A DNA stretch of 64,000 nucleotides, taken from the sequence record MW879344.1; one strand, given 5' to 3'. The position numbers and the translations under genes were made by a program. How positions within the stretch are numbered: position 1 is the first letter of the stretch; every line of letters starts with the position of its first letter. Shown one piece after another: positions 1,614 to 63,682 of this stretch. The notes under the pieces were generated by a model, which did no database searches, was not told where the DNA came from, and was given only the letters and a program-made list of their open reading frames with translations.

Positions 1614-1729
1614 GCAGTGATCGTCTAGAGGCTTAGGACACGAAAAAGCGATTCTTGGTTAAGAATCTTACGGCATCAATAAACTTTCATTTCACGAACG
1701 TAACGCAGGTTCGAATCCTGCTCACTGCA
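1614..1729 (+). tRNA. tRNA-Glu(TTC) interrupted by a 43-nt insert (1643-1685) in the anticodon stem
   Basis: Acceptor GCAGTGA/TCACTGC, T-arm GCAGG-TTCGAAT-CCTGC; removing 1643-1685 restores CG|TTC/GAACG stem around TTC (1691-1693). Confidence 0.8.
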
Positions 1730-2059: not shown

Positions 2060-2185
2060 GTGGGGTTAGCTCAGTCTGGTAGAGCAGCGAAAGAAAAAAC
2101 AATGGAATCTTGAAAAGGATTCTAACAGCATTATATCTTCTACTGTAAATTCGCAGGTCGGTGAGTTCGAATCCACCATCCCACA
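2060..2185 (+). tRNA. tRNA-Tyr(GTA)-like, short variable loop, interrupted by ~51-nt insert (~2092-2142)
   Basis: Acceptor GTGGGGT/ATCCCAC, D-stem GCTC/GAGC, GCGAA/TTCGC stem and CT-GTA-AA loop after removing insert. Confidence 0.75.
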
Positions 2186-2899: not shown

Positions 2900-3256
2900 A
2901 TGAAAGTTTATGTAGATGATATTCGTAATCCACAAAACCATCTAAGTTCTGAACAGGCAGCCGATGTAGTATGGATTAAAGAATGGTGGGATGCACGTAA
3001 CTTTATCTTTTATAATAATTTAGAAATTGAAGTGATTCATTTAGATAATTATCTAGGTGACCGTACCCACACTGGGGCTGATTTACTTCAAATGATTACA
3101 TATAGGTTTCGCCGTGGGGAATTCCCTAAGTTGAAACAAATTTATCTTCACAGTTCTGATAAAGATATTGTGAATAAACTGTATGACAAACATATTGAAC
3201 GTTGTACAGAAGCTGGTGTTGAATTAATTAAAAATTCACGTCCAAACCGTAGTTAA
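2900..3256 (+). CDS. cyclic-phosphate processing receiver-like domain protein (tandem paralog)
   Basis: MKVYVDDIRNP...IHLDNYLG...GAD...IYLHSSD; clear paralog of 2534-2899. Confidence 0.7.
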   Translation: MKVYVDDIRNPQNHLSSEQAADVVWIKEWWDARNFIFYNNLEIEVIHLDNYLGDRTHTGADLLQMITYRFRRGEFPKLKQIYLHSSDKDIVNKLYDKHIERCTEAGVELIKNSRPNRS

Positions 3257-3262
3257 ACAAAT

Positions 3263-3384
3263 GGCGAGTTAGCTCAGTTGGTAGAGCAGGAAAAAAACCG
3301 ATTCTTGTATTGAATCGTACAGCAAACAATACTATTGCACTTTTAATGCCCTTGTCGGGGGTTCAATTCCCTCACTCGCCACCA
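3263..3384 (+). tRNA. tRNA-Lys(TTT) interrupted by a 46-nt insert (3291-3336) in the anticodon stem
   Basis: Acceptor GGCGAGT/ACTCGCC+ACCA; removing 3291-3336 gives GG|GCA-CT-TTT-AA-TGCCC. Confidence 0.85.
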
Positions 3385-3444: not shown

Positions 3445-4056
3445 ATGAATATATGTTTACAATGTAATCAAGAAATTGATGATAAGAAAAAGTTTTGTAA
3501 TAAATCTTGTGCGGCAAAGTACAATAATTCTCATAGAATATTGTCGGAAGAAACAAAATCTAAAATTTCTAAATCTTTAAAAGATCGAGAAGCTAAATTT
3601 ATTGAAACTGAAAATGTTAAGGCTGGTAGACTTCGAGCAGGTGCAAAACGTAGTGAATATGCGATTGGAAAATTATTATCTGATGATTTTGAATCATTAA
3701 GTGTTATAAGAAAGAAAAAACGTGTAAAAATGGAACAAGATAATAAATGTTTAATATGTGATTTATCTGAATGGCGTGGTTCTTTATTAACATTGGAAGT
3801 AGATCATATAGATGGAAATAACATGAATAATAGTAGAGATAATTTAAGAGCTTTATGTCCTAATTGTCATTCACAAACTGAAACGTGGCGTGGGAAAAAT
3901 AGTAAAAAAGTTATTTCAGATGAACTTTTAATTGAGATTATTTCAGTTTCTTCATCTATTGCAGAAGTTATTCGAAATACCAATATGTCTAAATCAAAAA
4001 CTTCGTATAATAAAATCCGTGCTATTATGGAAATGAATAAACTATCATTTAACTAA
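3445..4056 (+). CDS. HNH homing endonuclease with N-terminal Zn-binding motif
   Basis: LEVDHIDGNNMNN...NLRALCPNCHSQT; CxxC...FCNKSC. Confidence 0.9.
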   Translation: MNICLQCNQEIDDKKKFCNKSCAAKYNNSHRILSEETKSKISKSLKDREAKFIETENVKAGRLRAGAKRSEYAIGKLLSDDFESLSVIRKKKRVKMEQDNKCLICDLSEWRGSLLTLEVDHIDGNNMNNSRDNLRALCPNCHSQTETWRGKNSKKVISDELLIEIISVSSSIAEVIRNTNMSKSKTSYNKIRAIMEMNKLSFN

Positions 4057-7274: not shown

Positions 7275-7680
7275 AATTATTTGTGGATTTCCTGGTATAG
7301 GTAAGAGTAGTATTAAAAATATCGGCAAAGTACTTGATTTGGATAGTTCTTTGTATACCAAGAATTCTTTATTTCCTGCTAATTATATTGTTGATATTGT
7401 ATCTGCAATGGATGAATATGATTATATTTTGGTAAGTACGCATGACGTACTTAGAAAAGAATTACAATCAATGGGTATTAGTTATACTAATGTATATCCA
7501 GAGATTGATTTAGGTGAAGAATACCACGACCGTTATGTTCAACGCGGAAGTCCTGAAAGTTTTATTAATTTTATTGATGAAAATTGGGATGACTTCATAT
7601 ACGAATTGCAGTATGATGATTCTGAATATGTTGAACTGGAAAGCGGTCAATTTCTTTCAGATATTATAGCAAATATTTGA
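7267..7680 (+). CDS. small P-loop NTPase/kinase-like protein
   Basis: Walker A GFPGIGKSS; DLDSS. Confidence 0.75.
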   Translation: MAKIICGFPGIGKSSIKNIGKVLDLDSSLYTKNSLFPANYIVDIVSAMDEYDYILVSTHDVLRKELQSMGISYTNVYPEIDLGEEYHDRYVQRGSPESFINFIDENWDDFIYELQYDDSEYVELESGQFLSDIIANI

Positions 7681-7706
7681 AACGAAAGAAAAAATTGTGG
7701 TATAAT
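7678..7706 (+). promoter_or_regulatory. TGAAAC-N17-TATAAT promoter class
   Basis: Same pattern at 7862-7890, 13345-13373, 17383-17411, 26431-26459, 41636-41664. Confidence 0.7.
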
Positions 7707-7723: not shown

Positions 7724-7840
7724 GGAATCTTACAGCAAAAATACTAATTTTTGATGAAAACGAAACGACGAGGTTCGAATCCTCACCCACGAATTGCCTT
7801 ATTATTAGTGGGAGCACGGTGCTGGATAAACAAAGATTCC
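7724..7840 (+). ncRNA. module-clamped, permuted tRNA-like RNA (degenerate)
   Basis: GGAATC-TTACAGCAA...GAGG-TTCGAAT-CCTC-ACCCAC...GTGGG...AAACAAA-GATTCC. Confidence 0.65.
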
Positions 7841-7861
7841 AGAATTTAAGTTAGAAAATTA

Positions 7862-7890
7862 TGAAACAAATCAAAAATTTGTGGTATAAT
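7862..7890 (+). promoter_or_regulatory. TGAAAC-N17-TATAAT promoter class
   Basis: TGAAAC 7862-7867, TGG-TATAAT ending 7890. Confidence 0.7.
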
Positions 7891-8023: not shown

Positions 8024-8141
8024 GAAATCTCACAGCAAACAAAACAATTTTTTTCCTTGCATAGAAAAACGGTGGGGTTCGATTCCCCAACATCCAAGTT
8101 GCTTTTAGGATGTGTCTGGAAGGCCGTATGACAAAGATTTC
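8024..8141 (+). ncRNA. module-clamped, permuted tRNA-like RNA (degenerate)
   Basis: GAAATCT-CACAGCAA...TGGGG-TTCGATT-CCCCA-ACATCC...GGATGT...ACAA-AGATTTC. Confidence 0.65.
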
Positions 8142-8317: not shown

Positions 8318-8391
8318 GTTCTGTTAGACAAATTGGTAAAGTCACCACCCTTTCAAGGTGGGGTTTACGGGTTCGACCCCCGTACAGAACG
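8318..8391 (+). tRNA. tRNA-Glu(TTC), uninterrupted
   Basis: GTTCTGT/ACAGAAC, CCACC-CT-TTC-AA-GGTGG; no encoded CCA. Confidence 0.92.
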
Positions 8392-8396
8392 CTAAA

Positions 8397-8506
8397 GGAT
8401 TCGCACAGCAACAATAAAATCTTAAAATTCAATTGGTGAAAACAACCTTGCAGTTCGATTCTGCTTCCACAATGCGTGGATCTGGTCGATAGAAAAAACC
8501 GAATCC
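8397..8506 (+). ncRNA. module-clamped, permuted tRNA-like RNA (degenerate)
   Basis: GGATTCG-CACAGCAA...GCAG-TTCGATT-CTGC-TTCCAC...GTGGA...AAAAAAC-CGAATCC. Confidence 0.6.
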
Positions 8507-8545
8507 TGATTTTAATTAAGAAGTACTAAAGAATTTGATACACAC

Positions 8546-8698
8546 GGATTTATACAGCAAACATAATCCTAAAATAAAACATACGATAATGTTACTAACT
8601 CGGAATTCGTTCCCTTCGTTAGTACTTGGCAACTTGGGTACTTAAATAAGTTGTATCACCTCACGTGTATCGGATTAGAGGTGATTATAAATAAATCC
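8546..8698 (+). ncRNA. module-clamped multi-hairpin RNA
   Basis: GGATTTA-TACAGCAA...three hairpins...TAAATCC. Confidence 0.6.
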
Positions 8699-9164: not shown

Positions 9165-9239
9165 GGGGTACGTAGCTCAGTCTGGTAGAGCAGCCATGCG
9201 AAAACGGTGTGTCGGTGGTTCGAATCCACTCGCTCCCCA
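9165..9239 (+). pseudogene. degenerate tRNA (Phe-like T-arm, anticodon unresolved)
   Basis: Intact D-arm and GGTGG-TTCGAAT-CCACT; mismatched acceptor and anticodon stems. Confidence 0.6.
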
Positions 9240-9243
9240 CTAA

Positions 9244-9300
9244 GGAATCTAGCAGCAACCATAACCCAATCAAACTTTTAATTTGACAATTATGGATTCC
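9244..9300 (+). ncRNA. module RNA carrying an isolated Lys(TTT)-type anticodon stem-loop
   Basis: GGAATC-TAGCAGCAA...TCAAA-CTTTTAA-TTTGA...GATTCC. Confidence 0.7.
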
Positions 9301-10668: not shown

Positions 10669-10714
10669 ATATAAATTCTGGATTCGAAAGAATCCTTTTT
10701 TAAGTGAGATGATT

Positions 10715-11329: not shown

Positions 11330-11341
11330 AAAAAAAGTTTT

Positions 11342-11393
11342 AGAATCTAACAGCAATCAAAACTCATTGGATATATGAAAAAAGATAGATTCT
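11342..11393 (+). ncRNA. minimal module RNA
   Basis: AGAATCT-AACAGCAA...TCAT-loop-ATGA-AAAAAGAT-AGATTCT. Confidence 0.65.
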
Positions 11394-11400
11394 AGTATTT

Positions 11401-11473: not shown

Positions 11474-11573
11474 CGAAGTAGTTCAGTACTGAAAAATGTA
11501 CAGTGAAATTATTCAACACTATAGGTAGCACTTTGAATGAATCAGTAAGCCTATAAGTAACTACAATAAATTT

Positions 11574-11700
11574 GGAATTCAACAGCAATTCACTTACTAA
11601 AAACAGCTACCTCACGGTTTGTAGGTTCAAGTCCTACCTTGTACTTTCGAGTACATGTGGTGAAAATGGTAAACACGGCTGTCCAAAAGAAATGAATTCC
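11574..11700 (+). tRNA. circularly permuted tRNA gene, Leu(TAA)-like
   Basis: 3' half 11596-11644, T-TTCG-A linker, 5' half 11651-11682; GCTGT/ACAGC anticodon stem; flanked by GGAATTC/GAATTCC. Confidence 0.75.
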
Positions 11701-11753
11701 AGTATTAATTAAGACATAAATATTCTTATACACTTTTTTGTAAGGATATAATT

Positions 11754-12353: not shown

Positions 12354-12361
12354 TAAGATTT

Positions 12362-12479
12362 GGAATTCAACAGCAAATCATTCTAAACCCGTAGCATGTC
12401 GTAGGTTCAAGTCCTACCAGTACTTTCGAGTACTGTAGCTCAGTTGGTAGAGCAGCCACCTTAAAAAGAAATGAATTCC
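12362..12479 (+). tRNA. circularly permuted tRNA-like gene, anticodon unresolved
   Basis: T-arm and CAGTACT, TTCG, AGTACTG and D-arm GCTC/GAGC; flanked by GGAATTC/GAATTCC. Confidence 0.7.
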
Positions 12480-12511
12480 AGTATTAATTAAAACAACATG
12501 AGTATAAATCA

Positions 12512-12961: not shown

Positions 12962-12971
12962 AACAAGTTTT

Positions 12972-13034
12972 GGAATCTAGCAGCACCCATAAAATGAAAT
13001 CAACTGTTAATTGAAAAATTCAAAAATGGATTCC
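12972..13034 (+). ncRNA. module RNA carrying an isolated Asn(GTT)-type anticodon stem-loop
   Basis: GGAATC-TAGCAGCA...TCAA-CTGTTAA-TTGA...GATTCC. Confidence 0.7.
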
Positions 13035-13054
13035 AGCCTATTTCGGAGTAAAAA

Positions 13055-13324
13055 ATGTATTATGCTCGATTAGAATATCCAAACAATGGATATGAGATTG
13101 AAAGAATACGTCTTAAAGCCTTAGATCGCAAAAAGTACTACCCAGTAGTTTCGATTGATATTGGTAGTTCAAGTACTCGCATATATCTTGAAGGTGATAA
13201 GAATGCATATAATAGTGTGAACTTTGAATTCTATACCAAACATGGTGATGAATATATTCTTGAAGATATTTTCGAAGACCCTGATTTAAATCCGTACTTG
13301 GATGATGATGATGAAGAATATTAA
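13055..13324 (+). CDS. hypothetical protein
   Basis: ORF with GGAG SD. Confidence 0.8.
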   Translation: MYYARLEYPNNGYEIERIRLKALDRKKYYPVVSIDIGSSSTRIYLEGDKNAYNSVNFEFYTKHGDEYILEDIFEDPDLNPYLDDDDEEY

Positions 13325-13392
13325 ATAAAAATACCACAAATAAATGAAACGCTTCAAAAAATTGTGGTATAATATAAGTAAGTTAAACAAGA

Positions 13393-13464
13393 GGTTATGT
13401 CGTATAAAGGTTATTACGGAGAGCTGTTAACTCTTTTATCTTGGTTCGATTCCAAGCATGACCG
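13393..13464 (+). tRNA. tRNA-Asn(GTT)
   Basis: GGTTATG/CATGACC, GAGAG-CT-GTT-AA-CTCTT. Confidence 0.9.
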
Positions 13465-13581
13465 CAAAAAGTTAAATTCACCAGGCGTACTATGGTGGGA
13501 AAGGTATCATGATACCAATTCGAATAGAATACGTATTAAACCCTTGAACGGTTTTCTGTAAACTCAATTTAACAAATAATT

Positions 13582-13636
13582 AAGAATCTAACAGCAATCA
13601 AAACTCATTCGATTATATGAAAAAAGATAGATTCTT
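13582..13636 (+). ncRNA. minimal module RNA
   Basis: Near-copy of 11342-11393. Confidence 0.65.
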
Positions 13637-13641
13637 GTTTT

Positions 13642-13865: not shown

Positions 13866-13947
13866 GCGGGATTAGCTCAGTGGTAGAGCACTTGCCTTCC
13901 AAGCAAGAGGCGAATAGGTTCCATCGGTTCGAATCCGATATTCCGCT
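13866..13947 (+). tRNA. tRNA-Gly(TCC) with enlarged variable region
   Basis: GCGGGAT/ATTCCGC, U73, CTTGC-CT-TCC-AA-GCAAG, ~15-nt variable region. Confidence 0.85.
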
Positions 13948-14065
13948 CAAACTAAACAAACAATAAGGTGATTTTTATGCTATAGAATCCTAGTACTGGT
14001 CCTCCTAAAGAATTTAATTCTGATATAAACAACTCAAAATTAAACTACTATAGGAAGAACATACC

Positions 14066-14400: not shown

Positions 14401-14457
14401 AAGAATCCAGCAGCAACTAAAACTCATTCGCTTAATATGAAAAAGAAACGGATTCTT
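14401..14457 (+). ncRNA. minimal module RNA
   Basis: AAGAATCC-AGCAGCAA...TCAT-loop-ATGA...GGATTCTT. Confidence 0.65.
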
Positions 14458-20427: not shown

Positions 20428-20514
20428 GGGTCGTTCACTCAGTTGGTTAGAGTACCGGACTTTTAATCCGGCGGGTATATCCCATCGAAGGTTCGAATCC
20501 TTCACGGCCTACCA
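20428..20514 (+). tRNA. tRNA-Lys(TTT) with long variable arm
   Basis: CCGGA-CT-TTT-AA-TCCGG, GGG-TATAT-CCC variable hairpin, ACCA. Confidence 0.88.
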
Positions 20515-54240: not shown

Positions 54241-54266
54241 AAAAAGCCCCAATAAGGGGCTTTTTT
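54241..54266. terminator. bidirectional intrinsic terminator
   Basis: AAAAAGCCCC-AATAA-GGGGCTTTTTT between convergent genes. Confidence 0.85.
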
Positions 54267-55401
54267 ATGATAATGAAGGAGTAACTAATGGTTGGAAACC
54301 AATAACTACCTTACTACTTCCATAATTTGGAAGTAATGAATAATTGCCACTATTACCACAACCATATATTTTAAAATCGGTTATAAAATATGTAGTACCT
54401 GTACCGAAATGAATAATATCTTTGAGTTGGGATATTATAGCAGGATCAGTACCAGGAACTTGTGTAAATGAAGACATATAATTATTCCAAGGTGCAGCAA
54501 TAGTATTTGCTCCACCAATTGGATATGTCGAAGTTTGATAACCACTGAAATAAAGATTATTATCTGTACCAATTATGTGAGTACAACTTTGATAACTATG
54601 TATTGATTTTATAGTTGACAAATTAAATGGAAGTACTATCCAGTCGGTAACACCAGAAGTTAAACCATTACCTAGTTGACCATTAGAATTTTGTCCTTGT
54701 ACATACCACGTACCATCACTTTTCTTTACAAATAATGCACCATACATTACGTATACATCAACAACATCTGTGTTTAATGTTATAAATGATGGATTAGTCG
54801 ATGGATTAGCTGAACCTAATAAATTTGTTCCATTATATCCAGAACCAACTATTGTACCATCATTTTTTAATACAAATAAGTTATCAATAATATCATCTTT
54901 TGTGAATATATCTTTCACATTAGTCAATGGTAGTTTAATAAAAGATTGACTTGTTGTAGTAGTTCCATTTCCATATGAACCATATCCATTTCCACCAACT
55001 GCCCAAACTTCACCAACAGTATTCAAAACAAATATAGAACTAGAACTTACACACATTTTTTTAACAATACCAAATGAGTTAAAACTTGAGCTAACATTGC
55101 TCCAAGGTACGGTTGTACGTATTCCAAATGGATTTGATGATCCGCTCCACCAGTAAGTACCATCATTCTTGAGTACAAATGACCAACTAGTATTACTCCA
55201 TACATCTTTAACATCTGAAATTGTTTTTACAAATCCAGTAAATGGTACACCTAAACCTAACCTAGAATCATCACCCATTCCATATAACGAATTTGTTGAA
55301 TCCTGAGAAAGTAGCCCTAAACTAATTCTACTAGTAACAAACTTTTTATAGAATCTTTTTTCGCGTATTGTAGTATTACTTATTATTGGGAAAGGTAACA
55401 T
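54265..55401 (-). CDS. MLPFP-family, RCC1-like beta-propeller protein
   Basis: VWAVGGNGYGSYG, GQNSNGQLG repeats. Confidence 0.8.
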   Translation of the reverse strand: MLPFPIISNTTIREKRFYKKFVTSRISLGLLSQDSTNSLYGMGDDSRLGLGVPFTGFVKTISDVKDVWSNTSWSFVLKNDGTYWWSGSSNPFGIRTTVPWSNVSSSFNSFGIVKKMCVSSSSIFVLNTVGEVWAVGGNGYGSYGNGTTTTSQSFIKLPLTNVKDIFTKDDIIDNLFVLKNDGTIVGSGYNGTNLLGSANPSTNPSFITLNTDVVDVYVMYGALFVKKSDGTWYVQGQNSNGQLGNGLTSGVTDWIVLPFNLSTIKSIHSYQSCTHIIGTDNNLYFSGYQTSTYPIGGANTIAAPWNNYMSSFTQVPGTDPAIISQLKDIIHFGTGTTYFITDFKIYGCGNSGNYSLLPNYGSSKVVIGFQPLVTPSLS

Positions 55402-55412
55402 ATATATTCCTC

Positions 55413-56255
55413 TTATTGATTATTTGTTAATTGATTAGGGAATGATCTACCTGCACCCCATATAACTCGTACTCCACCTTGGCATGTAGTAGAATTTGAA
55501 CCCCCTGCACCACGATAGTTAGTACTTCCCATATTTGAAGAACCAGCAGCACCTTCATTTCCCCGACCTCCACCAGTACCATTGTTACCTTGACCATACA
55601 TAGCAGTTCCACCACCTGAACCACCATATGACTGTGAACCTAGACCAGAACCGCCACCGCCGCCAGCACCACCAGCACCAGTTCCTCCTGATCCTCCTGA
55701 ATATACACCACCATTTCCTCCTGAACCAGAATATCCTCCAGCACCACCGGAACCACCTCTGCCGTTTCCATATTGTCCAGCACCACCGGAACCACCATTA
55801 GCACCCCCATCATTTATAGTACTTGCAGATTTACCACCTGTACCACCTGTACCTGCATATGGTGTTGTACCACCCGTACCACCATTCGCTATAACTAATG
55901 TATCAGTATTTCTTCTAATTGCACTTAATGTTCCACCGCCCCCAGTACTACCTATTGAATTAACTGGTGCACCTCTAGAACCAACAATTATTGTTAAGGT
56001 TTCGCCTGGAGTTACAGGAATATTATTTCTAAAACTTAGTCCACCGCCTCCGCCTCCGCCACCAGCAGGATATGAACCTGATCCACTAGGTGGACCATAA
56101 TATGTATTTGAACCACCACCACCACCGATAACAACTGCACTGATAGAATAAACATCATGAGGTACTGTAAAATTAAATGTTCCAGTACTAATCCATTCTT
56201 GTTGACCTTTAGGTGGAAGTTTGTTAGTATTACTTATTATTGGAAATGGTAACAT
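55413..56255 (-). CDS. MLPFP-family, glycine-rich fibre-type protein
   Basis: FTVP..VYSISAVVIGGGGG...GGVRVIWG. Confidence 0.8.
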   Translation of the reverse strand: MLPFPIISNTNKLPPKGQQEWISTGTFNFTVPHDVYSISAVVIGGGGGSNTYYGPPSGSGSYPAGGGGGGGGLSFRNNIPVTPGETLTIIVGSRGAPVNSIGSTGGGGTLSAIRRNTDTLVIANGGTGGTTPYAGTGGTGGKSASTINDGGANGGSGGAGQYGNGRGGSGGAGGYSGSGGNGGVYSGGSGGTGAGGAGGGGGSGLGSQSYGGSGGGTAMYGQGNNGTGGGRGNEGAAGSSNMGSTNYRGAGGSNSTTCQGGVRVIWGAGRSFPNQLTNNQ

Positions 56256-56269
56256 TTTTTTCTCCTTAA

Positions 56270-57433
56270 TTAAAATGGCATCCCATTCATTTTTGTTAAT
56301 GTAGTTCGTACTATATTTCCATCAGGCAACTGTGTTCCGTTACCAGTAGCTCCCCCCGCACCCCATAAATCACCAGAATTTGTTAATATTAATATCTTGG
56401 ACCAATCTTTTGAAATAGTATTAATATTATCTATACCTCCTAATGCTGTAAGATTTAGAGTATATACTGAACTTATTGGTGTAGTTGTATTACCATTGCC
56501 TATTTGTCCATATTCATTTCGACCACAATGACGTATTGTACCATTGCTTAAATATAATGGTGAACCTGAATTAGCATTAGTTGTATTACATTGAGTATAA
56601 AATCTTTGTACTGGATTAAATGATATAGAATTATTAATTATAGGAACAGTACTTGACGTTGGTGAAAGACTACCAACACCAGCTTGACCAGAACCATTAT
56701 TACCAGACCAATATATTTGCCCACTCAATAAGTAATACCATGTTGTAGTATATGTAGCTCCAATTTCAAAAACACCGGTTCTAGATTGTGTTGGTGTAGT
56801 TATAATTGCAGTACTTCCTACCCCACCTTCCCCATAGCTATTTTGACCACAAAATAAAACATTGTTAAATGAATCAATAAAATGTGTCCCAACAAAAGAA
56901 CAACGTAATTTTTTAATTCCATTAAGAGTACTATGTATCGTAAGACTTAAAATATCTGAACCTGAACTACCATTACCAATTTCACCATATGTATTTCGAC
57001 CACAATAAACATATTGACCACTTGTAGTTAAAATTCTAATACATTGACCAATATAACAATCTGCAATATCATATACACTTACACCAATTGCAGAAAAATA
57101 TTGTGTTACGTTTAACCATGTAGTAGTATTAGTACCAATTTGTGGAAATGCAACAGCACTTCCAGAATAATAAATTTGTAAATCAGTTCCTAAAACTAAT
57201 GTTCCATGTACGCCTAAAAAATATTTCCATACTCCATTTTTACATACTGTAAAAGTAGGAACATTTGAAGTTGTACCTAAACCTAGTTGTGAATAATTAT
57301 TTTGACCATATCCATATAATGTATTATCTTTTAAAAACATTGTGTTAGTATAATTCGTTTGAAGTGGTCTGTCAAACGGTTCTAATGGAGGTCTTGTATT
57401 TCCATATACTACTAGTACTGGACTCGGAAACAT
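56270..57433 (-). CDS. MLPFP-related (MFPSP), RCC1-like protein
   Basis: GQNNYSQLG, GRNTYGEIG, GRNEYGQIG. Confidence 0.8.
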   Translation of the reverse strand: MFPSPVLVVYGNTRPPLEPFDRPLQTNYTNTMFLKDNTLYGYGQNNYSQLGLGTTSNVPTFTVCKNGVWKYFLGVHGTLVLGTDLQIYYSGSAVAFPQIGTNTTTWLNVTQYFSAIGVSVYDIADCYIGQCIRILTTSGQYVYCGRNTYGEIGNGSSGSDILSLTIHSTLNGIKKLRCSFVGTHFIDSFNNVLFCGQNSYGEGGVGSTAIITTPTQSRTGVFEIGATYTTTWYYLLSGQIYWSGNNGSGQAGVGSLSPTSSTVPIINNSISFNPVQRFYTQCNTTNANSGSPLYLSNGTIRHCGRNEYGQIGNGNTTTPISSVYTLNLTALGGIDNINTISKDWSKILILTNSGDLWGAGGATGNGTQLPDGNIVRTTLTKMNGMPF

Positions 57434-57480
57434 ATTAAATCTCCTTTGTAAATTAATATCCAGTATTTACCTGTGTAATA

Positions 57481-57507
57481 AAAAAAGCCCATCCGTAGAT
57501 GAGCTTA
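57481..57507 (-). terminator. intrinsic terminator (minus)
   Basis: rc AAGCTCATCT-ACG-GATGGGCTTTTTT. Confidence 0.7.
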
Positions 57508-57510
57508 AAT

Positions 57511-58239
57511 TTAAATAGGATATATGTTGTTAATATCAAAGTTCTCTGTCCATACTGCTCCAGTTCGGAAACGCACTCTCTCGACAATACTATGTACTGT
57601 TCCAGATGGTGAGTTTACATGTCCACCAACACCACAAATAGTTGCAGATGCTGGAGATGCAACAGTGTAAGTAAATGAATCAACTAATATACCATTAATA
57701 AAAAAATAATTCATATTAGAAGTACTATCATATACATATGCAATATGTTTCCATGTGCTGGTGAACAACGATGAATAATTAGATTTAGGTCTAATAATAT
57801 TAGCACCGTTATTTTGATACCTCATACCTTGAGTATCTACACCATAAAACCATAATAAGTACTTGTTGTCATTTGGAGCTAATTGTCTATACATACCATA
57901 AGGTATAAATTCTATACCAGCAGTACTTGATTGTGAATACCACATATCTATAGTGAATGATGAAGTACTAAATGATGGTGGTATCTGTGAACTACCAGCC
58001 ACTAATAATGCACCATACAGTGCTATACCACTTCCATATGGAGAAGCAACACCAGTATTAAGAGTGGGATTAGGGGAGCTTGCATTTTGTTTATCTATAC
58101 TAATTATTTTACTTTTGTAGTCATTGAAATTGGTATTAGGAATAAAATTATTTGAATCAAATGCAAGTACTACATTGGAACCTGTGTACCAATTTTTGGC
58201 AACATTTCCATATTCCGATATTCTTGGAAATGGTAACAT
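57511..58239 (-). CDS. MLPFP-family, LamG/ConA-like lectin-fold protein
   Basis: FTIDMW, WKHIAYVYD, FFINGIL, VERVRF. Confidence 0.75.
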   Translation of the reverse strand: MLPFPRISEYGNVAKNWYTGSNVVLAFDSNNFIPNTNFNDYKSKIISIDKQNASSPNPTLNTGVASPYGSGIALYGALLVAGSSQIPPSFSTSSFTIDMWYSQSSTAGIEFIPYGMYRQLAPNDNKYLLWFYGVDTQGMRYQNNGANIIRPKSNYSSLFTSTWKHIAYVYDSTSNMNYFFINGILVDSFTYTVASPASATICGVGGHVNSPSGTVHSIVERVRFRTGAVWTENFDINNIYPI

Positions 58240-58248
58240 ACTATATCC

Positions 58249-59046
58249 TTATAAATCTGTTGTTTTTGAACTAGGAAATGCCCTTCCATTTCCCCATATA
58301 ATACGAACAGCCCCTGCTCCACCAGGACATAATGCAGTACCTCCACCACCTCCACCATATAAGCCGCCCCTTGATACTGTTGTACTTGTTGCAACACCAT
58401 CGGTTCCACCAGAACCACCTCTACCTACTGAACTCGATGCATTAGATGGAGAACCAGTTCTTGCCGCTCCACTTGCACCTTCACCAAGTAAACCAACTCC
58501 ACCACCAGAACCACCATAGAAGGTTGAACTAGATGTAAAAGCTACACCTGCTCCCCCTGCTCCACCCGTACCTGCACTAGATATAGTACCATTACCAATA
58601 CCACCATTACCAGAATATCCTCCAGCACCGCCACCACCACGTGATGAAGTATCGAATCCACCATTACCACCACCAGTACTGTTAACACCAATAGTACTAC
58701 TAGTGTCATTGTTATTACCACCTTTAGCAATTAATAATACTTCTGAAGTGCTAGCTCTTACTATTTTAGATGATACTGATACTGACCCAGCATTTGTTTG
58801 ATTCGCTGCGGTTATATTAAGTACTTCTCCTGGTGTTACTGGTATATTGTTTCTCCAGCGGAGATCACCACCAGCACCACCAATTACTGTATTTGAAATA
58901 TATCTACCTGAACCAGCACCTACGCATACGGCACATATACTATGAACTCCAGCAGGAACGGTAAAGGTTGTTGTTTGTGCAGTCCATTGTTGTTGACCAG
59001 TCGGTACTGATACTGTTGTGTGACTGATGATTGGAAATGGTAACAT
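58249..59046 (-). CDS. MLPFP-family, glycine-rich fibre-type protein
   Basis: FTVPAGVHSICAVCVGAG...GAVRIIWG; paralog of 55413-56255. Confidence 0.8.
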   Translation of the reverse strand: MLPFPIISHTTVSVPTGQQQWTAQTTTFTVPAGVHSICAVCVGAGSGRYISNTVIGGAGGDLRWRNNIPVTPGEVLNITAANQTNAGSVSVSSKIVRASTSEVLLIAKGGNNNDTSSTIGVNSTGGGNGGFDTSSRGGGGAGGYSGNGGIGNGTISSAGTGGAGGAGVAFTSSSTFYGGSGGGVGLLGEGASGAARTGSPSNASSSVGRGGSGGTDGVATSTTVSRGGLYGGGGGGTALCPGGAGAVRIIWGNGRAFPSSKTTDL

Positions 59047-59103
59047 ATTGAATTCCTTATTTTAAAATATTTACCCAAAATAATATTAATTTGAGTTAAG
59101 TTT

Positions 59104-60237
59104 TTATACACTTGGAAATGATGTTTGTCTTGAACCAAGTACAACATTCGTGGTAGTACTTCCTAATCTCCCATCAGCACTATAACCAGATGCATATTTC
59201 GTGTTATCAATCAAGTTTATAATTAACATACCAGCACGTATATTATCTGAATAATCACTAATTGTGGTAGGGAATGTATATGAAGTAAACACTGGAACAA
59301 TAGCAGTACTTCCAGTAGTACTTAAACTAGAATATGAATTTATTCCAGCGAACCATAAAGTACTAGGATCTGATTTAAGTACATAATATGTATTGTATTC
59401 TGAATCAACTGCGGATAATACGTTTGATGCCATTAGATAAGGATCACTGTAATATACATTACCTGTATTATTATTCCCTGCTTGTGCTTGTGACGAATTT
59501 CCAATAAAATATAAATTATCATTGGAATCTATATAGTTCAAATGCTTTCCACCAACTGAAAAAGATTTAACACCATTCAAAAATGGAGCACTTGTCCATA
59601 TTCTTTTAGTACTGTCAGTTGCATTCATTGGTATACCTGTAGCACTTACTGCACCACATGCTTGATAACTTCCATCCATCATCTTTGCATATGTACACAT
59701 ACCAGATGAACCAGTACCATAAGCATATCCAACTTCTTGAACTGAACTTAATGTCTTGGTTAAAGTACTGTACGAAGATACAGTAGTACCAAATTGATAA
59801 CTTGTATTATTTCCTATAAAATATAAATCACCATTCTTTAGAAGTACACAGGCACTTTGAAAAGAAGCACTTTTAATAGTCACTATATCACTTATGTTTG
59901 TTATACCAGCAGACCTAAATTGAGAAGTCAAATCTAATTTTTGATATGATGAACCAGTCATTCCCCAAAAGGAGTTATCACTACCGTATCCGTAAATTTT
60001 ATTACTTGCATAACATAACATGTAAGTGATATACTGACCAGTAAACACAGCATCTACCGATTCACCTGGTGGGGTTTGTTCGAACCATGCAGTACTGACT
60101 GGTGCATTTGACCAATATCTACCACGCACAAATACTCTTTTGTTTATAAAATATAATGTGTCAATTAACCCATTAAGTAATGGTTCTATTGGCTTATATC
60201 TACTATTCGTATTACTTATTATTGGAAATGGTAACAT
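59104..60237 (-). CDS. MLPFP-family, RCC1-like protein
   Basis: LYFIGNN repeats. Confidence 0.75.
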   Translation of the reverse strand: MLPFPIISNTNSRYKPIEPLLNGLIDTLYFINKRVFVRGRYWSNAPVSTAWFEQTPPGESVDAVFTGQYITYMLCYASNKIYGYGSDNSFWGMTGSSYQKLDLTSQFRSAGITNISDIVTIKSASFQSACVLLKNGDLYFIGNNTSYQFGTTVSSYSTLTKTLSSVQEVGYAYGTGSSGMCTYAKMMDGSYQACGAVSATGIPMNATDSTKRIWTSAPFLNGVKSFSVGGKHLNYIDSNDNLYFIGNSSQAQAGNNNTGNVYYSDPYLMASNVLSAVDSEYNTYYVLKSDPSTLWFAGINSYSSLSTTGSTAIVPVFTSYTFPTTISDYSDNIRAGMLIINLIDNTKYASGYSADGRLGSTTTNVVLGSRQTSFPSV

Positions 60238-60246
60238 TTTTTCTCC

Positions 60247-60504
60247 TTAATTAAAATCTGGTATTACTAATGGCCTATAAACACTATCATTTTGTGGGAA
60301 CATTAATCCTAAACCCCATACCTCTTGATAATCTGCACCTAAACTGTACGTAGTATCACCAAGTTGTCCGTACTGGTTATTGCCTCTAGTATATAATTGT
60401 CCATTTGTTCCAAGTACTGCAATGTGGGATGATCCAGCTATAAACTTTTGAATTCTGTAATTACTTTTTTGACGTAAATTACTTATGATTGGAAATGGTA
60501 ACAT
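60247..60504 (-). CDS. MLPFP-family, truncated single RCC1-like repeat
   Basis: GQLYTRGNNQYGQLG; only 85 aa. Confidence 0.65.
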   Translation of the reverse strand: MLPFPIISNLRQKSNYRIQKFIAGSSHIAVLGTNGQLYTRGNNQYGQLGDTTYSLGADYQEVWGLGLMFPQNDSVYRPLVIPDFN

Positions 60505-60518
60505 TTGTTGTTCTCCTA

Positions 60519-61676
60519 TTATTCTGGAACCTCTTGTGGTAAAAAATTATATGTAGTCGCATCTAACCACGTTACATTACCACAGGCATATAATATATTA
60601 TTCTGTACAACAAATGTAACACCTGTAGTATCAGCATTACCCGCTGAACAAAATGATGTAATTCCAGTACTAGGCAATGGCATAATAGTAAATCCAGTAC
60701 TCTTGTTAGTACTTGAACCTAAACTTGGCCCAGCACTTCCCGCTGAATATAAATTTGTACTACCTGCATCAGTATAAAATGATTGGTGACCAATTTCTAA
60801 ATATCCAGTACCAAATGAACTAAATGAATTTCCAGTTCCTCCAGCACCAACCCTAAACGTAGGTGTGTAGTTAGAACCATAAGGAGGTATAGCACCACCA
60901 GGATTCGTAGATGTGTATCCACAATATAATATTGCAGTATCATTCAATGTACTATCAGATGCAGCATATATTAATGTATGAATGTATCCCTCAAAGGCCA
61001 TGACAGGATATGTGTATCCAGCAGGTAATGTTATAGTAGTCCATGAAGCCATGTCAGTATTACTATTATTTCCCATCTTATAATTCTGTGCTAAACCCCT
61101 TGCATACAATATATTATTTGTACCTATACAAAACGTTCCAGCTAGATTACTGTGAACGTACTTCACCGATGAACGTGTTAACGTAAATGCAGTACTAGTA
61201 CTATTCAAGGCACCAACTCCTAAAGTATTATATGCGTTAAATCCTAAAGCATATAAGTTGTTATTCGTATTCAATAATACAAATGTTCCATATATGTTTA
61301 AACATATCTGCTTAACTGTCGTTGCAGGTGTTGAGGTTAATGTGTATAATCTATCATATACCGTCCACAAATAACTCGTACCACCATATCCTAATGCTCT
61401 ACCATATCCAGCACATAAGAATTGATCATCATATGTTTGTATTATAGTGTGATAATTGTTTAACCAAACCTCTTTAACATTCGTCCGTACTAGTACCCAA
61501 TTCTTATAATCACTAGGTGAAGCTATTCCAAAATTAGTATATTGATTTGAACCCCGCATGTATAAATTACCATTATCGTATAATAATGCAACAACTCTAC
61601 CTGATCCAAGTACTTTCTTTATTTTATTTTTTACTACTGTATTCCCATACTTATTCATTATTGGAAAGGGTAACAT
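60519..61676 (-). CDS. MLPFP-family, RCC1-like protein
   Basis: LYMRGSNQY, LYALGFNAYNTLG repeats. Confidence 0.8.
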   Translation of the reverse strand: MLPFPIMNKYGNTVVKNKIKKVLGSGRVVALLYDNGNLYMRGSNQYTNFGIASPSDYKNWVLVRTNVKEVWLNNYHTIIQTYDDQFLCAGYGRALGYGGTSYLWTVYDRLYTLTSTPATTVKQICLNIYGTFVLLNTNNNLYALGFNAYNTLGVGALNSTSTAFTLTRSSVKYVHSNLAGTFCIGTNNILYARGLAQNYKMGNNSNTDMASWTTITLPAGYTYPVMAFEGYIHTLIYAASDSTLNDTAILYCGYTSTNPGGAIPPYGSNYTPTFRVGAGGTGNSFSSFGTGYLEIGHQSFYTDAGSTNLYSAGSAGPSLGSSTNKSTGFTIMPLPSTGITSFCSAGNADTTGVTFVVQNNILYACGNVTWLDATTYNFLPQEVPE

Positions 61677-61781
61677 GTAAAATTCTCCTTATTTTTTACT
61701 ACTGTGTAGTAGTCACCTATAATCATCAGTATTTACCTCATTAAACAAAAATAGCTCAACCTAATATTGAGCTATATGTCG

Positions 61782-61880
61782 TTACACTAATTGTCTTATA
61801 CTTAGTTTCTGAATGTATCCATAAAATGTAGATACAGATGCACCACGTACATTATTACTTATTATTCGTAGTGGTAACAT
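61782..61880 (-). pseudogene. MLPFP-family relic (32 aa, MLPLRIISN...)
   Basis: Family leader with GGAG SD, early stop. Confidence 0.6.
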
Positions 61881-61889
61881 ATATCTCCC

Positions 61890-62555
61890 TTAACTTAATT
61901 TTGTTATCTTTATATATGCTAATGATCCTGAACTATAATAGTACTGACCACTCGCCGCATCTACATAGCCACCACCTATACTAAAGTAATCACCTCGACC
62001 AAATGCATATGCAGGATAATTCTGTGTTACTCCAGTACGTGCATTGTATATGCTCCAACCAATCCCACGTATGAATGTTATCTTTAATGTCTCCCAACCT
62101 AATGTATTCGCCCCATTCATCAGTACTCTATTAAAACTAGAACCCGTATCACAAAATATTTGAAAGTACGTGCTCGGATACTGATTCGCACTACACGATA
62201 TTCCCGCAACCCTGCGTGTACCATAATTTCCAGTCTGCCATAGTACCTGTAATGTTCCCGTATTACACTTGAACATGTAATCTATCTCGAAATCGATATT
62301 CCTTAAATCTAATTGTGAACCATCAGTAATTGCAGGTGATAAGTAATATCCATTGTTGAATACCATTACATTTCTATCTACTTCAGAATCATATTGTACT
62401 ATTCCCGCTGAACCACTCGATAACGGAAACTGTACCCCAGTACTGTCTATCATAGATGTACTTCCTATATCTTGTCTATCAAAATCTATATCCAATAGTA
62501 TATTAGCCGCTGGTGCAACATTTCCGTACTCGACTATTCTCGCAAATGGTAACAT
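61890..62555 (-). CDS. MLPFP-family (MLPFA), LamG/ConA-like protein
   Basis: FEIDYMF, WETLKITF, GSLAYIKI. Confidence 0.7.
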   Translation of the reverse strand: MLPFARIVEYGNVAPAANILLDIDFDRQDIGSTSMIDSTGVQFPLSSGSAGIVQYDSEVDRNVMVFNNGYYLSPAITDGSQLDLRNIDFEIDYMFKCNTGTLQVLWQTGNYGTRRVAGISCSANQYPSTYFQIFCDTGSSFNRVLMNGANTLGWETLKITFIRGIGWSIYNARTGVTQNYPAYAFGRGDYFSIGGGYVDAASGQYYYSSGSLAYIKITKLS

Positions 62556-62599
62556 CTCTATTCCTCTCCTTGAACCTAGTGTTAGGTCACTCCATTATT

Positions 62600-63682
62600 T
62601 TATTTCGGCTGCTCTAACTTATAGTACGATATAGAAGTACCCTGATTAACTAATAAATCAGAACCAGCTCCATATATCCCCGTACTCGTGTGCAATACCG
62701 TACTCGTGTTTGTACCTGTTAAATCAATTAATGATCCACTAAAAGATGTAATAGGATAATACTTCGTCCAGACCGTCTGATTCGATGAAGAACTTCCAGA
62801 ATATAAAGTCTGCCCACATCCCCATATACCATCACTTCCAATCACCGATGCTCCATATCCCCAACAATGTATCTTAGCAGGTAACAGTATTAAAGTATTC
62901 ATTAACTTCGTTAAACCCCTATTACCTGTACTTCCACTTAAACCTAAAGATATTAATGCATTCTGACCCCTGCCCCATATCTCTCCATTAAGAAGTACTA
63001 TATATACATTGTTAATTCCTCCTAATGCAAATGATACAGAAGTCGTTATACTAGTGTAAGTACTAAATGATGTACCACTGTTAGAAATCTGTAACTGTGC
63101 ATTTGAACCAGTACCAAATAATTCTGAACCCCGTACTATATAAGTGTTGGTACTGTTAATACTAAATGAATCTACATTACTAGAACTCAACGTTAGTACT
63201 GGACTTATCGCTGTACTTCCTGTACCTAAATTTGTACCAGTTAAATATAAATTCTTATTACTTAATAATACTCCTATACTACCAGTACTACTCTGTATAT
63301 CTGTAACAGTACTTCCATCTGAGGTTAAGGTGCTTAAATCATAAAACTCTGTCCATGTCAGTACTTGAGTAGATACAGAACTATCACCTATTATTGCTCC
63401 CCTCTTACCACTGTATAGGAGCTTCTTCCCCTTACGTATTATAGATGTGTATGTGTTGGAGTTCCTATTCAAATATATATCATCCACTCCAGTTGCACTC
63501 AATGTCCATGTAGTCCTCTGTGTGGTATCACCTAATCCTAATTGACCATTGGAATTTGTACCATAAGAGTATACATTTCCTGTGTTACTTAAAGCAAGAT
63601 AATATCCATTAGCACCAACGTATTTTACAATAGATACCTTCAATATTATATGTGTATTACTTATTATTGGAAATGGTAACAT
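62600..63682 (-). CDS. MLPFP-family, RCC1-like protein
   Basis: VYSYGTNSNGQLGLG, IWGRGQN. Confidence 0.8.
   Translation of the reverse strand: MLPFPIISNTHIILKVSIVKYVGANGYYLALSNTGNVYSYGTNSNGQLGLGDTTQRTTWTLSATGVDDIYLNRNSNTYTSIIRKGKKLLYSGKRGAIIGDSSVSTQVLTWTEFYDLSTLTSDGSTVTDIQSSTGSIGVLLSNKNLYLTGTNLGTGSTAISPVLTLSSSNVDSFSINSTNTYIVRGSELFGTGSNAQLQISNSGTSFSTYTSITTSVSFALGGINNVYIVLLNGEIWGRGQNALISLGLSGSTGNRGLTKLMNTLILLPAKIHCWGYGASVIGSDGIWGCGQTLYSGSSSSNQTVWTKYYPITSFSGSLIDLTGTNTSTVLHTSTGIYGAGSDLLVNQGTSISYYKLEQPK

Follow-up and report, generated by a model that had tools for sequence, protein, structure and literature searches.

The last 64 kilobases (kb) of Erwinia phage pEa_SNUABM_49 (MW879344.1, 358 kb; Eneladusvirus, a Rak2-like jumbo phage), hereafter the window, carry at positions 1614-1729 a transfer RNA (tRNA) gene of Glu type whose anticodon stem is interrupted by a module of 43 nucleotides (nt). 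This gene probably encodes a tRNA-shaped non-coding RNA with a docking module in the 5' strand of its anticodon stem, which would make it the partner of a Ro60-like protein of the DUF2828 family. I consider this the most likely reading because the same module recurs beside DUF2828 genes in many unrelated phages. Positions are those of the window unless stated otherwise, a window position being the record position minus 294049. According to ARAGORN and the Rfam tRNA model, the window holds about two dozen tRNA genes with small early open reading frames (ORFs) in between.

Reading the sequence of 1614-1729 directly gave an acceptor stem GCAGTGA/TCACTGC of 7 base pairs (bp), a D stem GTCT/GGAC, a variable loop of 4 nt (TAAC) and a T arm GCAGG-TTCGAAT-CCTGC. 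With U11-A24 and U13-G22, the D arm UCGUCUAGAGGCUUAGGACA is of the bacterial tRNA-Glu type, as in E. coli tRNA-Glu. Deleting 1643-1685 joined CG to TTC opposite GAACG and regained a standard cloverleaf with the loop ATTTCAC and the anticodon TTC, the exon junction then being GGACACG followed directly by TTCATTTCAC. This bears out the sequence-only reading of the window that preceded this analysis, in which a tRNA-Glu cloverleaf interrupted at 28/29 by 43 nt and an intact tRNA-Glu(TTC) gene near 8318 had been proposed. The pieces which that reading listed for the insert were correct but added up to 33 nt, as the last 10 nt (TCAATAAACT) were missing. Its expectation that scanners overlook the gene was right for ARAGORN and for the Rfam tRNA model at an expectation value (E) of 1 or below, but GenBank records do annotate the gene, under identities that were judged wrong: tRNA-Phe(aaa) in pEa_SNUABM_49 and, for the orthologues, tRNA-Pseudo-AAA in Yersinia phage fHe-Yen9-04 (Yen9-04 hereafter) and tRNA-OTHER in Pectobacterium phage CBB. 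Uninterrupted Glu, Lys and Tyr tRNAs are likewise encoded (ARAGORN). A group I intron, taken to be a self-splicing fold of ~200 nt or more in the anticodon loop, was rejected, given that the insert is only 43 nt long, sits in the stem at 28/29 and had no Rfam intron match at E<=1.

Using blastn, the interrupted gene was recovered together with its insert from the Rak2-like phages Serratia BF, Yersinia fHe-Yen9-04, Pectobacterium CBB, Cronobacter GAP32, Xanthomonas XbC2 and Erwinia Kaldavass, which span the genera Eneladusvirus and Mimasvirus plus the related phage Kaldavass, and from the T4-like vibriophages nt-1, CZ01, VS1 and D479 as well as one KVP40-sized IMG/VR genome. Ten distinct orthologue sequences from the two phage families were compared over six helices, and none of the 275 pair cells held a non-canonical pair. 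Compensatory double changes were present in every helix, affecting 5/7 pairs of the acceptor stem, 1/4 of the D stem, 1/2 of the upper and 2/3 of the lower anticodon stem, 3/5 of the T stem, and 3/7 of the helix P1 inside the insert.

The insert is one member of a family with at least 15 copies in this phage, all on the plus strand, 14 of them in the window (1.6-14.5 kb) and one upstream. In the module, P1 is followed after two bases by (A/U)C(A/G)GCA(A) and a tail poor in G, and an A-rich strand lies on the opposite side. Its settings are of three kinds, related by circular permutation: it lies within four tRNA genes, it closes YrlA-like permuted tRNA mimics, or it closes mini hairpins of anticodon-like form (Table 1). 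Three of the interrupted genes lie in the window and the fourth ~17 kb upstream (positions 13282-13400 of that upstream stretch); common to their four inserts are an A-rich strand J', a P1 built around GAUUC/GAAUC, 2-3 bases, ACAGCA or ACGGCA, and an A/U-rich tail J. Eleven further copies of the P1-CAGCA unit are spread over 7.7-14.5 kb, again all on the plus strand, and the core motif GAWWCNNNCAGCAA was found 7 times in the window compared with 0.13 expected, on the plus strand only. The copy at 1614-1729 was assigned to the family because its P1 sequence fits, its two-base spacer ends in U and the strand opposite is A-rich.

In the permuted copies, the CAGCA-bearing strand of P1 comes first, and the A-rich strand and the other strand of P1 come last. 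Some enclose a T arm, a closed stem of acceptor type and a hairpin of D type; in others the interior is no more than a small hairpin, whose loop is CUUUUAA in one case and CUGUUAA in another. P1 has J' and J on its flanks whether it is loop-capped within a tRNA or built from the two ends, and P1 was the closing helix in all folds of the permuted and mini elements examined. One permuted element matched the Rfam YrlA model at 12394-12456 with 40.5 bits, compared with 37.4 bits for the genuine YrlA beside the Ro gene of mycobacteriophage Alice. The third interrupted gene matched the Rfam tRNA model with 46.5 bits and a long insertion, and the orthologue of the second is labelled tRNA-Pseudo-GAA in Yen9-04. 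Searching Rfam at E<=1 with window positions 1-30 kb, a human-gut phage scaffold described below and five DUF2828 loci returned only tRNA and weak YrlA matches; within that scope the module matched no Rfam family, be it a ribozyme, riboswitch, intron or transfer-messenger RNA (tmRNA) family.

The third interrupted gene had a blastn match in a GC-richer human-gut phage scaffold (MT837596.1) with at least three tandem interrupted tRNAs together with permuted and mini elements, whose P1 sequences are unrelated to those of pEa_SNUABM_49 while the strand UACAGCAAUC is identical. Approximately 1 kb from these RNAs, the scaffold encodes a protein of 483 amino acids with the Pfam domains DUF2828 and DUF7788/vWA. 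A tblastn search with this protein found 709 phage records, with Serratia phage BF at E 7e-76, and the matches included KVP40-like vibriophages, Felix O1-like coliphages, P100-like Listeria phages, and Campylobacter, Staphylococcus, Enterococcus, Bacillus, Aeromonas and mycobacterial phages; some of these genes are already labelled 'Ro-like RNA binding protein'. In pEa_SNUABM_49 the DUF2828 gene and an adjoining RNA ligase gene occupy record positions 99701-102909 (the DUF2828 gene itself at about 101-103 kb) with a CCA-adding enzyme gene nearby, and an RNA ligase gene adjoins the DUF2828 gene in BF too. In the corresponding block of pEa_SNUABM_12 (record 99827-103034), one of three ORFs is labelled 'putative structural protein'. 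The neighbours in vibriophage nt-1 yielded nothing relevant, gp57B being Acb1.

In six further phages (wV8, Listeria AG20, Campylobacter CP81, Staphylococcus CF1, mycobacteriophage JoeDirt and Bacillus Skywalker), modules were found in the unannotated gaps flanking the DUF2828 gene, with 2-4 units each. Here, a fully paired P1 of 6-9 bp and lineage-specific sequence is followed by two bases and ACAGCAA, and some of the units enclose T arms. For a broader view, 80 IMG/VR loci were picked solely by DUF2828 homology, both strands were scanned, and densities were calculated for modules with a P1 of at least 7 bp. On the gene strand, there were 1.89 modules/kb within 300 nt upstream of the gene and 0.54/kb within 300 nt downstream of it. 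The opposite strand had none in either zone, and inside the gene and far downstream the density was 0.02-0.04/kb. Overall, 44/80 loci had a module within 300 nt of the DUF2828 gene. Under looser criteria, the gene strand yielded 158 modules and the other strand 46, compared with 33 in shuffled sequence. The 129 independent strict modules shared features that the search had not imposed: a 2-nt gap (100/129), a U before the motif (105/129), a G-poor tail, and an A-rich strand ahead of the partner arm. Their consensus (P1, a 2-nt gap ending in U, (U/A)CAGCAA and a G-poor tail) agrees with the layout at 1614-1729. Scanning IMG/VR with an exact pattern was of little use, as only 2 of the 78 loci returned were real and the pattern is therefore too short for a database of that size.

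A canonical Ro60 partner was dropped at first, when tblastn with human Ro60 hit 357 phages but no Erwinia, Serratia or Yersinia phage, and the idea of a Ro-like protein was revived by the DUF2828 gene beside the module RNAs of the gut scaffold. Searching the PDB by sequence with DUF2828 gave nothing useful. An AlphaFold model of the Yen9-04 DUF2828 orthologue was then informative: built from a 26-sequence alignment, it had a predicted local distance difference test score (pLDDT) of 82 and a predicted template modelling score (pTM) of 0.81. Its nine best PDB matches were all full-length Ro60/Rsr chains (Thermus phage phiLo, Xenopus, human, Deinococcus) with E 4e-10 to 9e-8 and template modelling (TM) scores of 0.44-0.59, and isolated vWA domains came next with E>=3e-3. 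As modelled, the DUF2828 protein thus has a Ro60-like fold. The orthologue of Listeria phage CKA15 has been reported to match Rsr by HHpred and to be present in virions, and no more than ~2 kb upstream of its gene are extremely abundant non-coding transcripts, which were suggested in that study to be possible Y RNAs (PMC12282133). Given its presence in virions, the Ro-like protein may be packaged. In the literature searched, I found no paper linking DUF2828 to RNA and none on these inserts in Rak2-like or KVP40-like phages.

The surrounding genes point to RNA repair. Two tandem cREC genes sit between the second and third interrupted genes (Table 1); cREC proteins are predicted to process 2',3'-cyclic phosphates (PMC7824862, PMC9503650). 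RtcB is encoded near the DUF2828 gene in a Listeria phage. The cREC pair is syntenic in Yen9-04 (g434, g435) and XbC2 (445, 446).

Taken together, I infer that the RNA from 1614-1729 would physically bind the DUF2828 protein, stay unspliced and act downstream as a tRNA mimic. The protein would be a Ro60-like ring with DUF2828 and a vWA domain, and by analogy with Ro60 and Y RNA its contacts would be P1 and the CAGCAA strand next to it. The tRNA body, made up of the acceptor, D and T arms and the small anticodon hairpin, would be a second, tRNA-mimicking module that may recruit or occupy tRNA-recognising factors in early infection, such as the repair ligase, the CCA enzyme, nucleases and modification enzymes. 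The RNA would thus work unspliced, as an 'open-acceptor' relative of the YrlA class.

Several points weigh against this proposal. The copy at 1614-1729 is a variant, with ACGGCAU and not ACAGCAA, and falls outside the seven core-motif matches. Unlike in most lineages, the DUF2828 gene of this phage is ~190 kb away from the module RNAs, and the clustering upstream of DUF2828 genes elsewhere could partly reflect a cis-regulatory leader. A stem split into 2+3 bp and loops with U33 and a purine at 37 would fit a spliced tRNA as well. As for the protein, DUF2828 is not a member of Pfam TROVE (Pfam assigns DUF2828 plus DUF7788/VWA), profile comparison with Ro60 by hhalign aligned the vWA part only, with a probability of 40%, and the tblastn null with human Ro60 mentioned above counts on the same side. 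The modules do not contain the Ro-binding motif GNCGAAN0-1G described earlier (PMC4201824) and have (U/A)CAGCAA in the equivalent place.

The best-placed alternative, although unlikely, is protein-dependent tRNA splicing. Here the module would be an intron-like cassette with the Ro-like protein perhaps as recognition factor or chaperone, while the exons would be held by the tRNA body and healed and sealed by phage enzymes to give a decoding tRNA; the permuted copies would use the same cassette. This would fit the regained 5-bp stem and, in most members, 7-nt loop with U33 and a purine at 37, the covariation of both half-stems, and a break at 28/29 that falls in a duplex, which is the substrate type of T4 Rnl2-type ligases (PMC3884662). 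The RNA ligase gene beside DUF2828, the CCA enzyme and the two cREC genes between interrupted tRNAs would also fit, as would the cluster of sirtuin, 2H, Nudix-cREC and PIN reported for BF (PMC9503650), and in having one motif for both its interrupted and its permuted tRNA-like genes the phage resembles archaea and algae, whose tRNA genes use the bulge-helix-bulge in this way. However, no endonuclease came to light (no screen of the genome for EndA/Sen homologues was made), and there was no bulge-helix-bulge in the minimum-free-energy or centroid fold (no dedicated motif search was run). The distances from P1 to the junctions vary, J' being 6-12 nt and J 17-22 nt long, so a simple ruler mechanism is unlikely. 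In many copies, such as the mini elements and those directly upstream of the DUF2828 gene, there is nothing to splice, and the phage has intact Glu, Lys and Tyr tRNAs besides. A version in which the module is a true processing cassette is distinctly less probable: DUF2828 would read P1 and CAGCAA, excision would follow (in the permuted tRNAs via circular intermediates), and the nick would be healed by cREC and kinase/phosphatase activities and sealed by the neighbouring RNA ligase.

The anticodon loops speak to the same question. A conserved anticodon in a 7-nt loop, as expected for canonical decoding, was not found among the Glu-type orthologues: the loop is AUUUCAC in BF, CBB and GAP32, as here, AUUCAAC (anticodon UCA) in Yen9-04 although this orthologue is 94% identical overall, AUUUCCA in D479, and the 8-nt AUUCAUAA in XbC2, Kaldavass and the vibriophages. 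In the third gene, CUUUUAA is replaced by AUGAUAA in Yen9-04 (UUU to GAU) with the acceptor stem unchanged. The XbC2 orthologue of the second gene (positions 2401-2478 of the XbC2 stretch; orthologous by position and acceptor type) is labelled tRNA-Glu(TTC), but has an 8-bp helix capped by UUCG and no anticodon loop. The drifting loops and the loop-less orthologue argue against a plain decoding tRNA made by splicing and fit a structural tRNA mimic better. As separate observations, AUUCAUAA is kept from the Xanthomonas and Erwinia jumbo phages to the T4-like vibriophages, and a second interrupted gene keeps the loop AUAGGGA over the same span while its stems covary. In the interrupted tRNA genes of the vibriophages, 8-10 nt of leader and trailer pair and lengthen the acceptor helix, which was not seen in the Erwinia phage.

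It is also improbable that the RNAs are mainly bait for anticodon nucleases or other tRNA-targeting defence toxins, with anticodon-like hairpins of the Glu UUC, Lys UUU, Asn GUU and Tyr GUA types soaking up the enzymes, the module merely stabilising or marking the RNA, and the Ro-like protein being dispensable. The isolated hairpins of the mini elements with tRNA-Lys-like CUUUUAA and tRNA-Asn-like CUGUUAA loops would suit this role, as would the location of the RNAs in the early region for host takeover (PMC5259590). Between pEa_SNUABM_49 and pEa_SNUABM_12, which are otherwise ~99% identical, the third interrupted gene shows just ~80% identity, the kind of pattern that an arms race would be expected to leave. 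The differences affect P1, the lower anticodon stem and the T stem, with CUUUUAA kept, and the gene looks like a local hotspot of replacement or diversification. Nevertheless, bait alone leaves unexplained why the module tracks DUF2828 genes across phyla and why some members have no anticodon-like hairpin at all, and it could coexist with a DUF2828-bound RNA as its downstream role. Directly downstream of the third gene, 3445-4056 encodes a free-standing HNH homing endonuclease (weak sub-threshold NUMOD3 match), and pEa_SNUABM_12 has a different, shorter ORF at this site.

A cis-acting signal is more improbable still. The module would then serve RNA processing or stability, or autoregulate DUF2828 from the leader of its mRNA, and its copies would have landed in tRNA genes by chance, as might be suggested by the density peak in the 300 nt upstream of the DUF2828 gene on the same strand, by the mini elements that directly abut tRNA 5' ends, and by a P1-like hairpin with a T-run that acts as a terminator-like site at 10680-10695. 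This is hard to reconcile with several copies per locus, many of them enclosing tRNA-like domains, with copies 190 kb from the DUF2828 gene in this phage, and with tRNA-embedded copies kept along with their cloverleaf between Rak2-like and T4-like phages.

Other candidates were rejected on single grounds. Small self-cleaving ribozymes and preQ1-I had no Rfam support, and P1 is too short for an RNase III site. A miniature inverted-repeat transposable element or other DNA-level repeat does not agree with covarying arms, a spacing of 4 to ~140 nt and a permuted order that is sensible only at the RNA level. A tmRNA-like tag frame was discarded since stop codons are frequent by chance in AT-rich sequence, a retron msr since no reverse transcriptase was evident by eye, and a ToxI-type antitoxin mimic since the likeness is too loose; pairing of CAGCAAUC with RNase P RNA was considered and dropped. 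A decaying tRNA pseudogene with a mobile-element scar, as the labels 'Pseudo' or 'OTHER' of some annotators would have it, has a vanishingly small probability and is excluded because of the absence of non-canonical pairs and the compensatory changes in every helix, besides which the insert sequence itself is conserved. The sequence-only reading had been right to treat the gene as real, tRNA-derived and no pseudogene, and its 'decoy' was near the mark in that the gene resembles a tRNA mimic; where it erred was in seeing a one-off intron in what is one copy of a repeated, conserved module that also occurs where there is nothing to splice.

Table 1. Interrupted, permuted and mini elements of the window, with associated features
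Feature	Position	Strand	Description
Interrupted tRNA-Glu-type gene	1614-1729	+	116 nt; CCA not encoded
5' part	1614-1642	+	acceptor 5' strand 1614-1620, D arm 1623-1639, A26 1640, C27 G28 1641-1642 (upper anticodon-stem pairs)
43-nt module	1643-1685	+	splits anticodon stem at 28/29
Module, strand J'	1643-1649	+	A-rich, AAAAAGC
Module, P1 hairpin	1650-1667	+	GATTCTT-GGTT-AAGAATC
Module, strand J	1668-1685	+	spacer UU, ACGGCA, tail UCAAUAAACU
3' part	1686-1729	+	lower anticodon stem-loop TTC-ATTTCAC-GAA 1686-1698, C42 G43 1699-1700, variable loop TAAC, T arm 1705-1721, acceptor 3' strand 1722-1728, A73 1729
Second interrupted tRNA-like gene	2060-2185	+	intact 5-bp anticodon stem GCGAA/TTCGC; module replaces most of loop, end CUGUAAA
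Module of second gene	2105-2122 (P1)	+	P1 GAATCTT-GAAA-AGGATTC, then UA-ACAGCA
Tandem cREC genes	2534-2899, 2900-3256	+	between second and third interrupted genes; PF20274, 33.7 and 43.7 bits (cut-off 27)
Third interrupted tRNA-like gene	3263-3384	+	tRNA-Lys type, CCA encoded; stem split into GG and GCA opposite TGC-CC
Module of third gene	3299-3317 (P1), 3319-3325 (ACAGCAA)	+	loop CUUUUAA
Promoter-like sequence	7677-7706		TTGAAA-18-TATAAT, upstream of element 7724-7840
Permuted tRNA-like element, YrlA-like	7724-7840	+	end-formed P1 encloses J, T arm, closed acceptor-like hairpin and D-like hairpin
Permuted tRNA-like element	8024-8141	+	P1 GAAATCT/AGATTTC
Uninterrupted tRNA-Glu(UUC)	8318-8392	+	ARAGORN; body less bacterial-tRNA-Glu-like than that of the interrupted gene
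Permuted tRNA-like element	8396-8507	+	begins 4 nt past intact tRNA-Glu; 3-bp/7-nt anticodon-like hairpin, T arm, closed acceptor stem
Longer element	8547-8697	+	closed by P1 GATTTA/TAAATC, then UACAGCAA; from sequence alone
Mini element	9244-9300	+	P1 GGAATCTA/TGGATTCC around GCAGCAA and a 5-bp hairpin with tRNA-Lys-like loop CUUUUAA
Mini element	11340-11395	+	end 5 nt upstream of tRNA-Ile
Permuted tRNA-like element	11572-11702	+	10-bp P1, 5-bp anticodon-type stem ACAGC/GCTGT, T arm, acceptor-like stem closed by short loop
Permuted tRNA-like element	12360-12481	+	7-bp acceptor stem capped by UUCG; YrlA match 12394-12456
Mini element	12970-13036	+	hairpin UCAA-CUGUUAA-UUGA, tRNA-Asn-like loop
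Mini element	13581-13637	+	end 4 nt upstream of tRNA-Gln
Mini element	14401-14457	+	between ORFs

Among the features around these elements, two near-identical extended -10 promoters (TTTGTGGTATAAT) were noted, one before the permuted element 7724-7840 and the other at 7861-7890, ~130 nt upstream of 8024-8141. This pair suggests, from promoter-like sequence, that at least element 7724-7840 may have its own transcription start. The stretch 9166-9238 is tRNA-like (36.4 bits with the Rfam tRNA model) and missed by ARAGORN, with an odd anticodon region, and a mini element lies 5 nt downstream of it. Hairpins of the form GATTC-loop-GAATC are over-represented in the window (7 versus 0.41 expected). 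Four hairpins in coding regions and the terminator-like copy at 10681 have no CAGCA and were therefore not counted as modules; in the latter (10680-10695), GGATTC-GAAA-GAATCC is followed by the T-run, so that the P1 arm sequence is reused.

Other tRNA genes also deviate in length or type. tRNA-Lys(UUU) at 20428-20514 (87 nt) and tRNA-Gly(UCC) at 13866-13948 (83 nt) are long for class I, possibly owing to inserts of another kind. A suppressor-type tRNA with the anticodon CUA at record 290410-290485 is labelled tRNA-Pyl in this phage and Sup-CTA in Yen9-04. On the minus strand, 54265-63682 holds a run of ORFs of 360-390 amino acids with the look of a paralogous family.

If a partnership with the DUF2828 protein holds true, the module RNAs would be a widespread, previously undescribed class of phage non-coding RNAs, and RNA partners would be assigned to a domain without known function that at least 709 phage records contain, several of them from phages used in biocontrol. 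It would account for 'pseudo', 'undetermined' or mis-assigned long tRNAs in jumbo and T4-like phages, extend the Ro/Y-RNA principle to a protein-binding module within a complete tRNA, and provide a candidate identity for the very abundant non-coding transcripts of the Listeria phage. Were splicing true instead, bacteria and phages would have their first protein-dependent tRNA splicing system and their first permuted tRNA genes. The nick-sealing phage RNA ligases, whose substrates have long been in question, would then have a natural one.

Three known systems invite comparison. Like T4 rnaC and rnaD, the module RNAs are small RNAs of unassigned role among phage tRNA genes, those of T4 being stable (PMC3014915), and rnaC has a T arm and an acceptor-like 3' end; by inspection, rnaC and rnaD have no clear P1-CAGCAA module, and homology is not established. 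Disrupted tRNA genes of archaea and algae, with non-canonical introns or split and permuted arrangements, are processed via a bulge-helix-bulge (PMC3978253, PMC3218864). They are alike in that one motif marks both interrupted and permuted genes and that its removal restores the cloverleaf. They differ in that the phage fold shows no such motif, as far as could be seen without a dedicated search, that the host is a bacterium with no known splicing endonuclease, and that the phage module is conserved in sequence and also stands alone without exons, any ligation being conjectural.

The closest relatives appear to be the YrlA-type Y RNAs and their Ro60/Rsr partners (Chen et al. 2014, PMC4201824), including Ro60 with Yrl1/2 in Thermus phage phiLo (PMC12135203). 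Both kinds of RNA have two modules: a stem for protein binding (putative in the phage RNAs), which carries a conserved unpaired motif and a large internal loop, is combined with a tRNA-like domain of T arm, acceptor-like stem and D arm. The partner, known or proposed, is a HEAT-repeat ring protein with a vWA domain. In both, the RNA genes come in several copies with a link to RNA ligase or repair genes, and the permuted phage members weakly match Rfam YrlA. The usual position of such RNA genes next to the protein gene was seen for the phage module in 44/80 IMG/VR loci and in 7 annotated phage lineages. In contrast, the phage protein belongs to Pfam DUF2828 and not to TROVE, its RNAs carry (U/A)CAGCAA two bases after P1 in place of GNCGAAN0-1G, and in pEa_SNUABM_49 they are far from the protein gene. 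The terminal stem formed by the 5' and 3' ends of YrlA is present in the permuted and mini elements but not in 1614-1729, where a complete tRNA has P1 as a capped hairpin within its anticodon stem, pairs its ends as the acceptor stem and has an anticodon hairpin of its own. A capped P1 inside a complete tRNA is an architecture undescribed for Y RNAs, and I therefore rate three things as new relative to the Ro/Y-RNA kind: the protein family, the RNA motif, and the placement of the module inside a complete tRNA.

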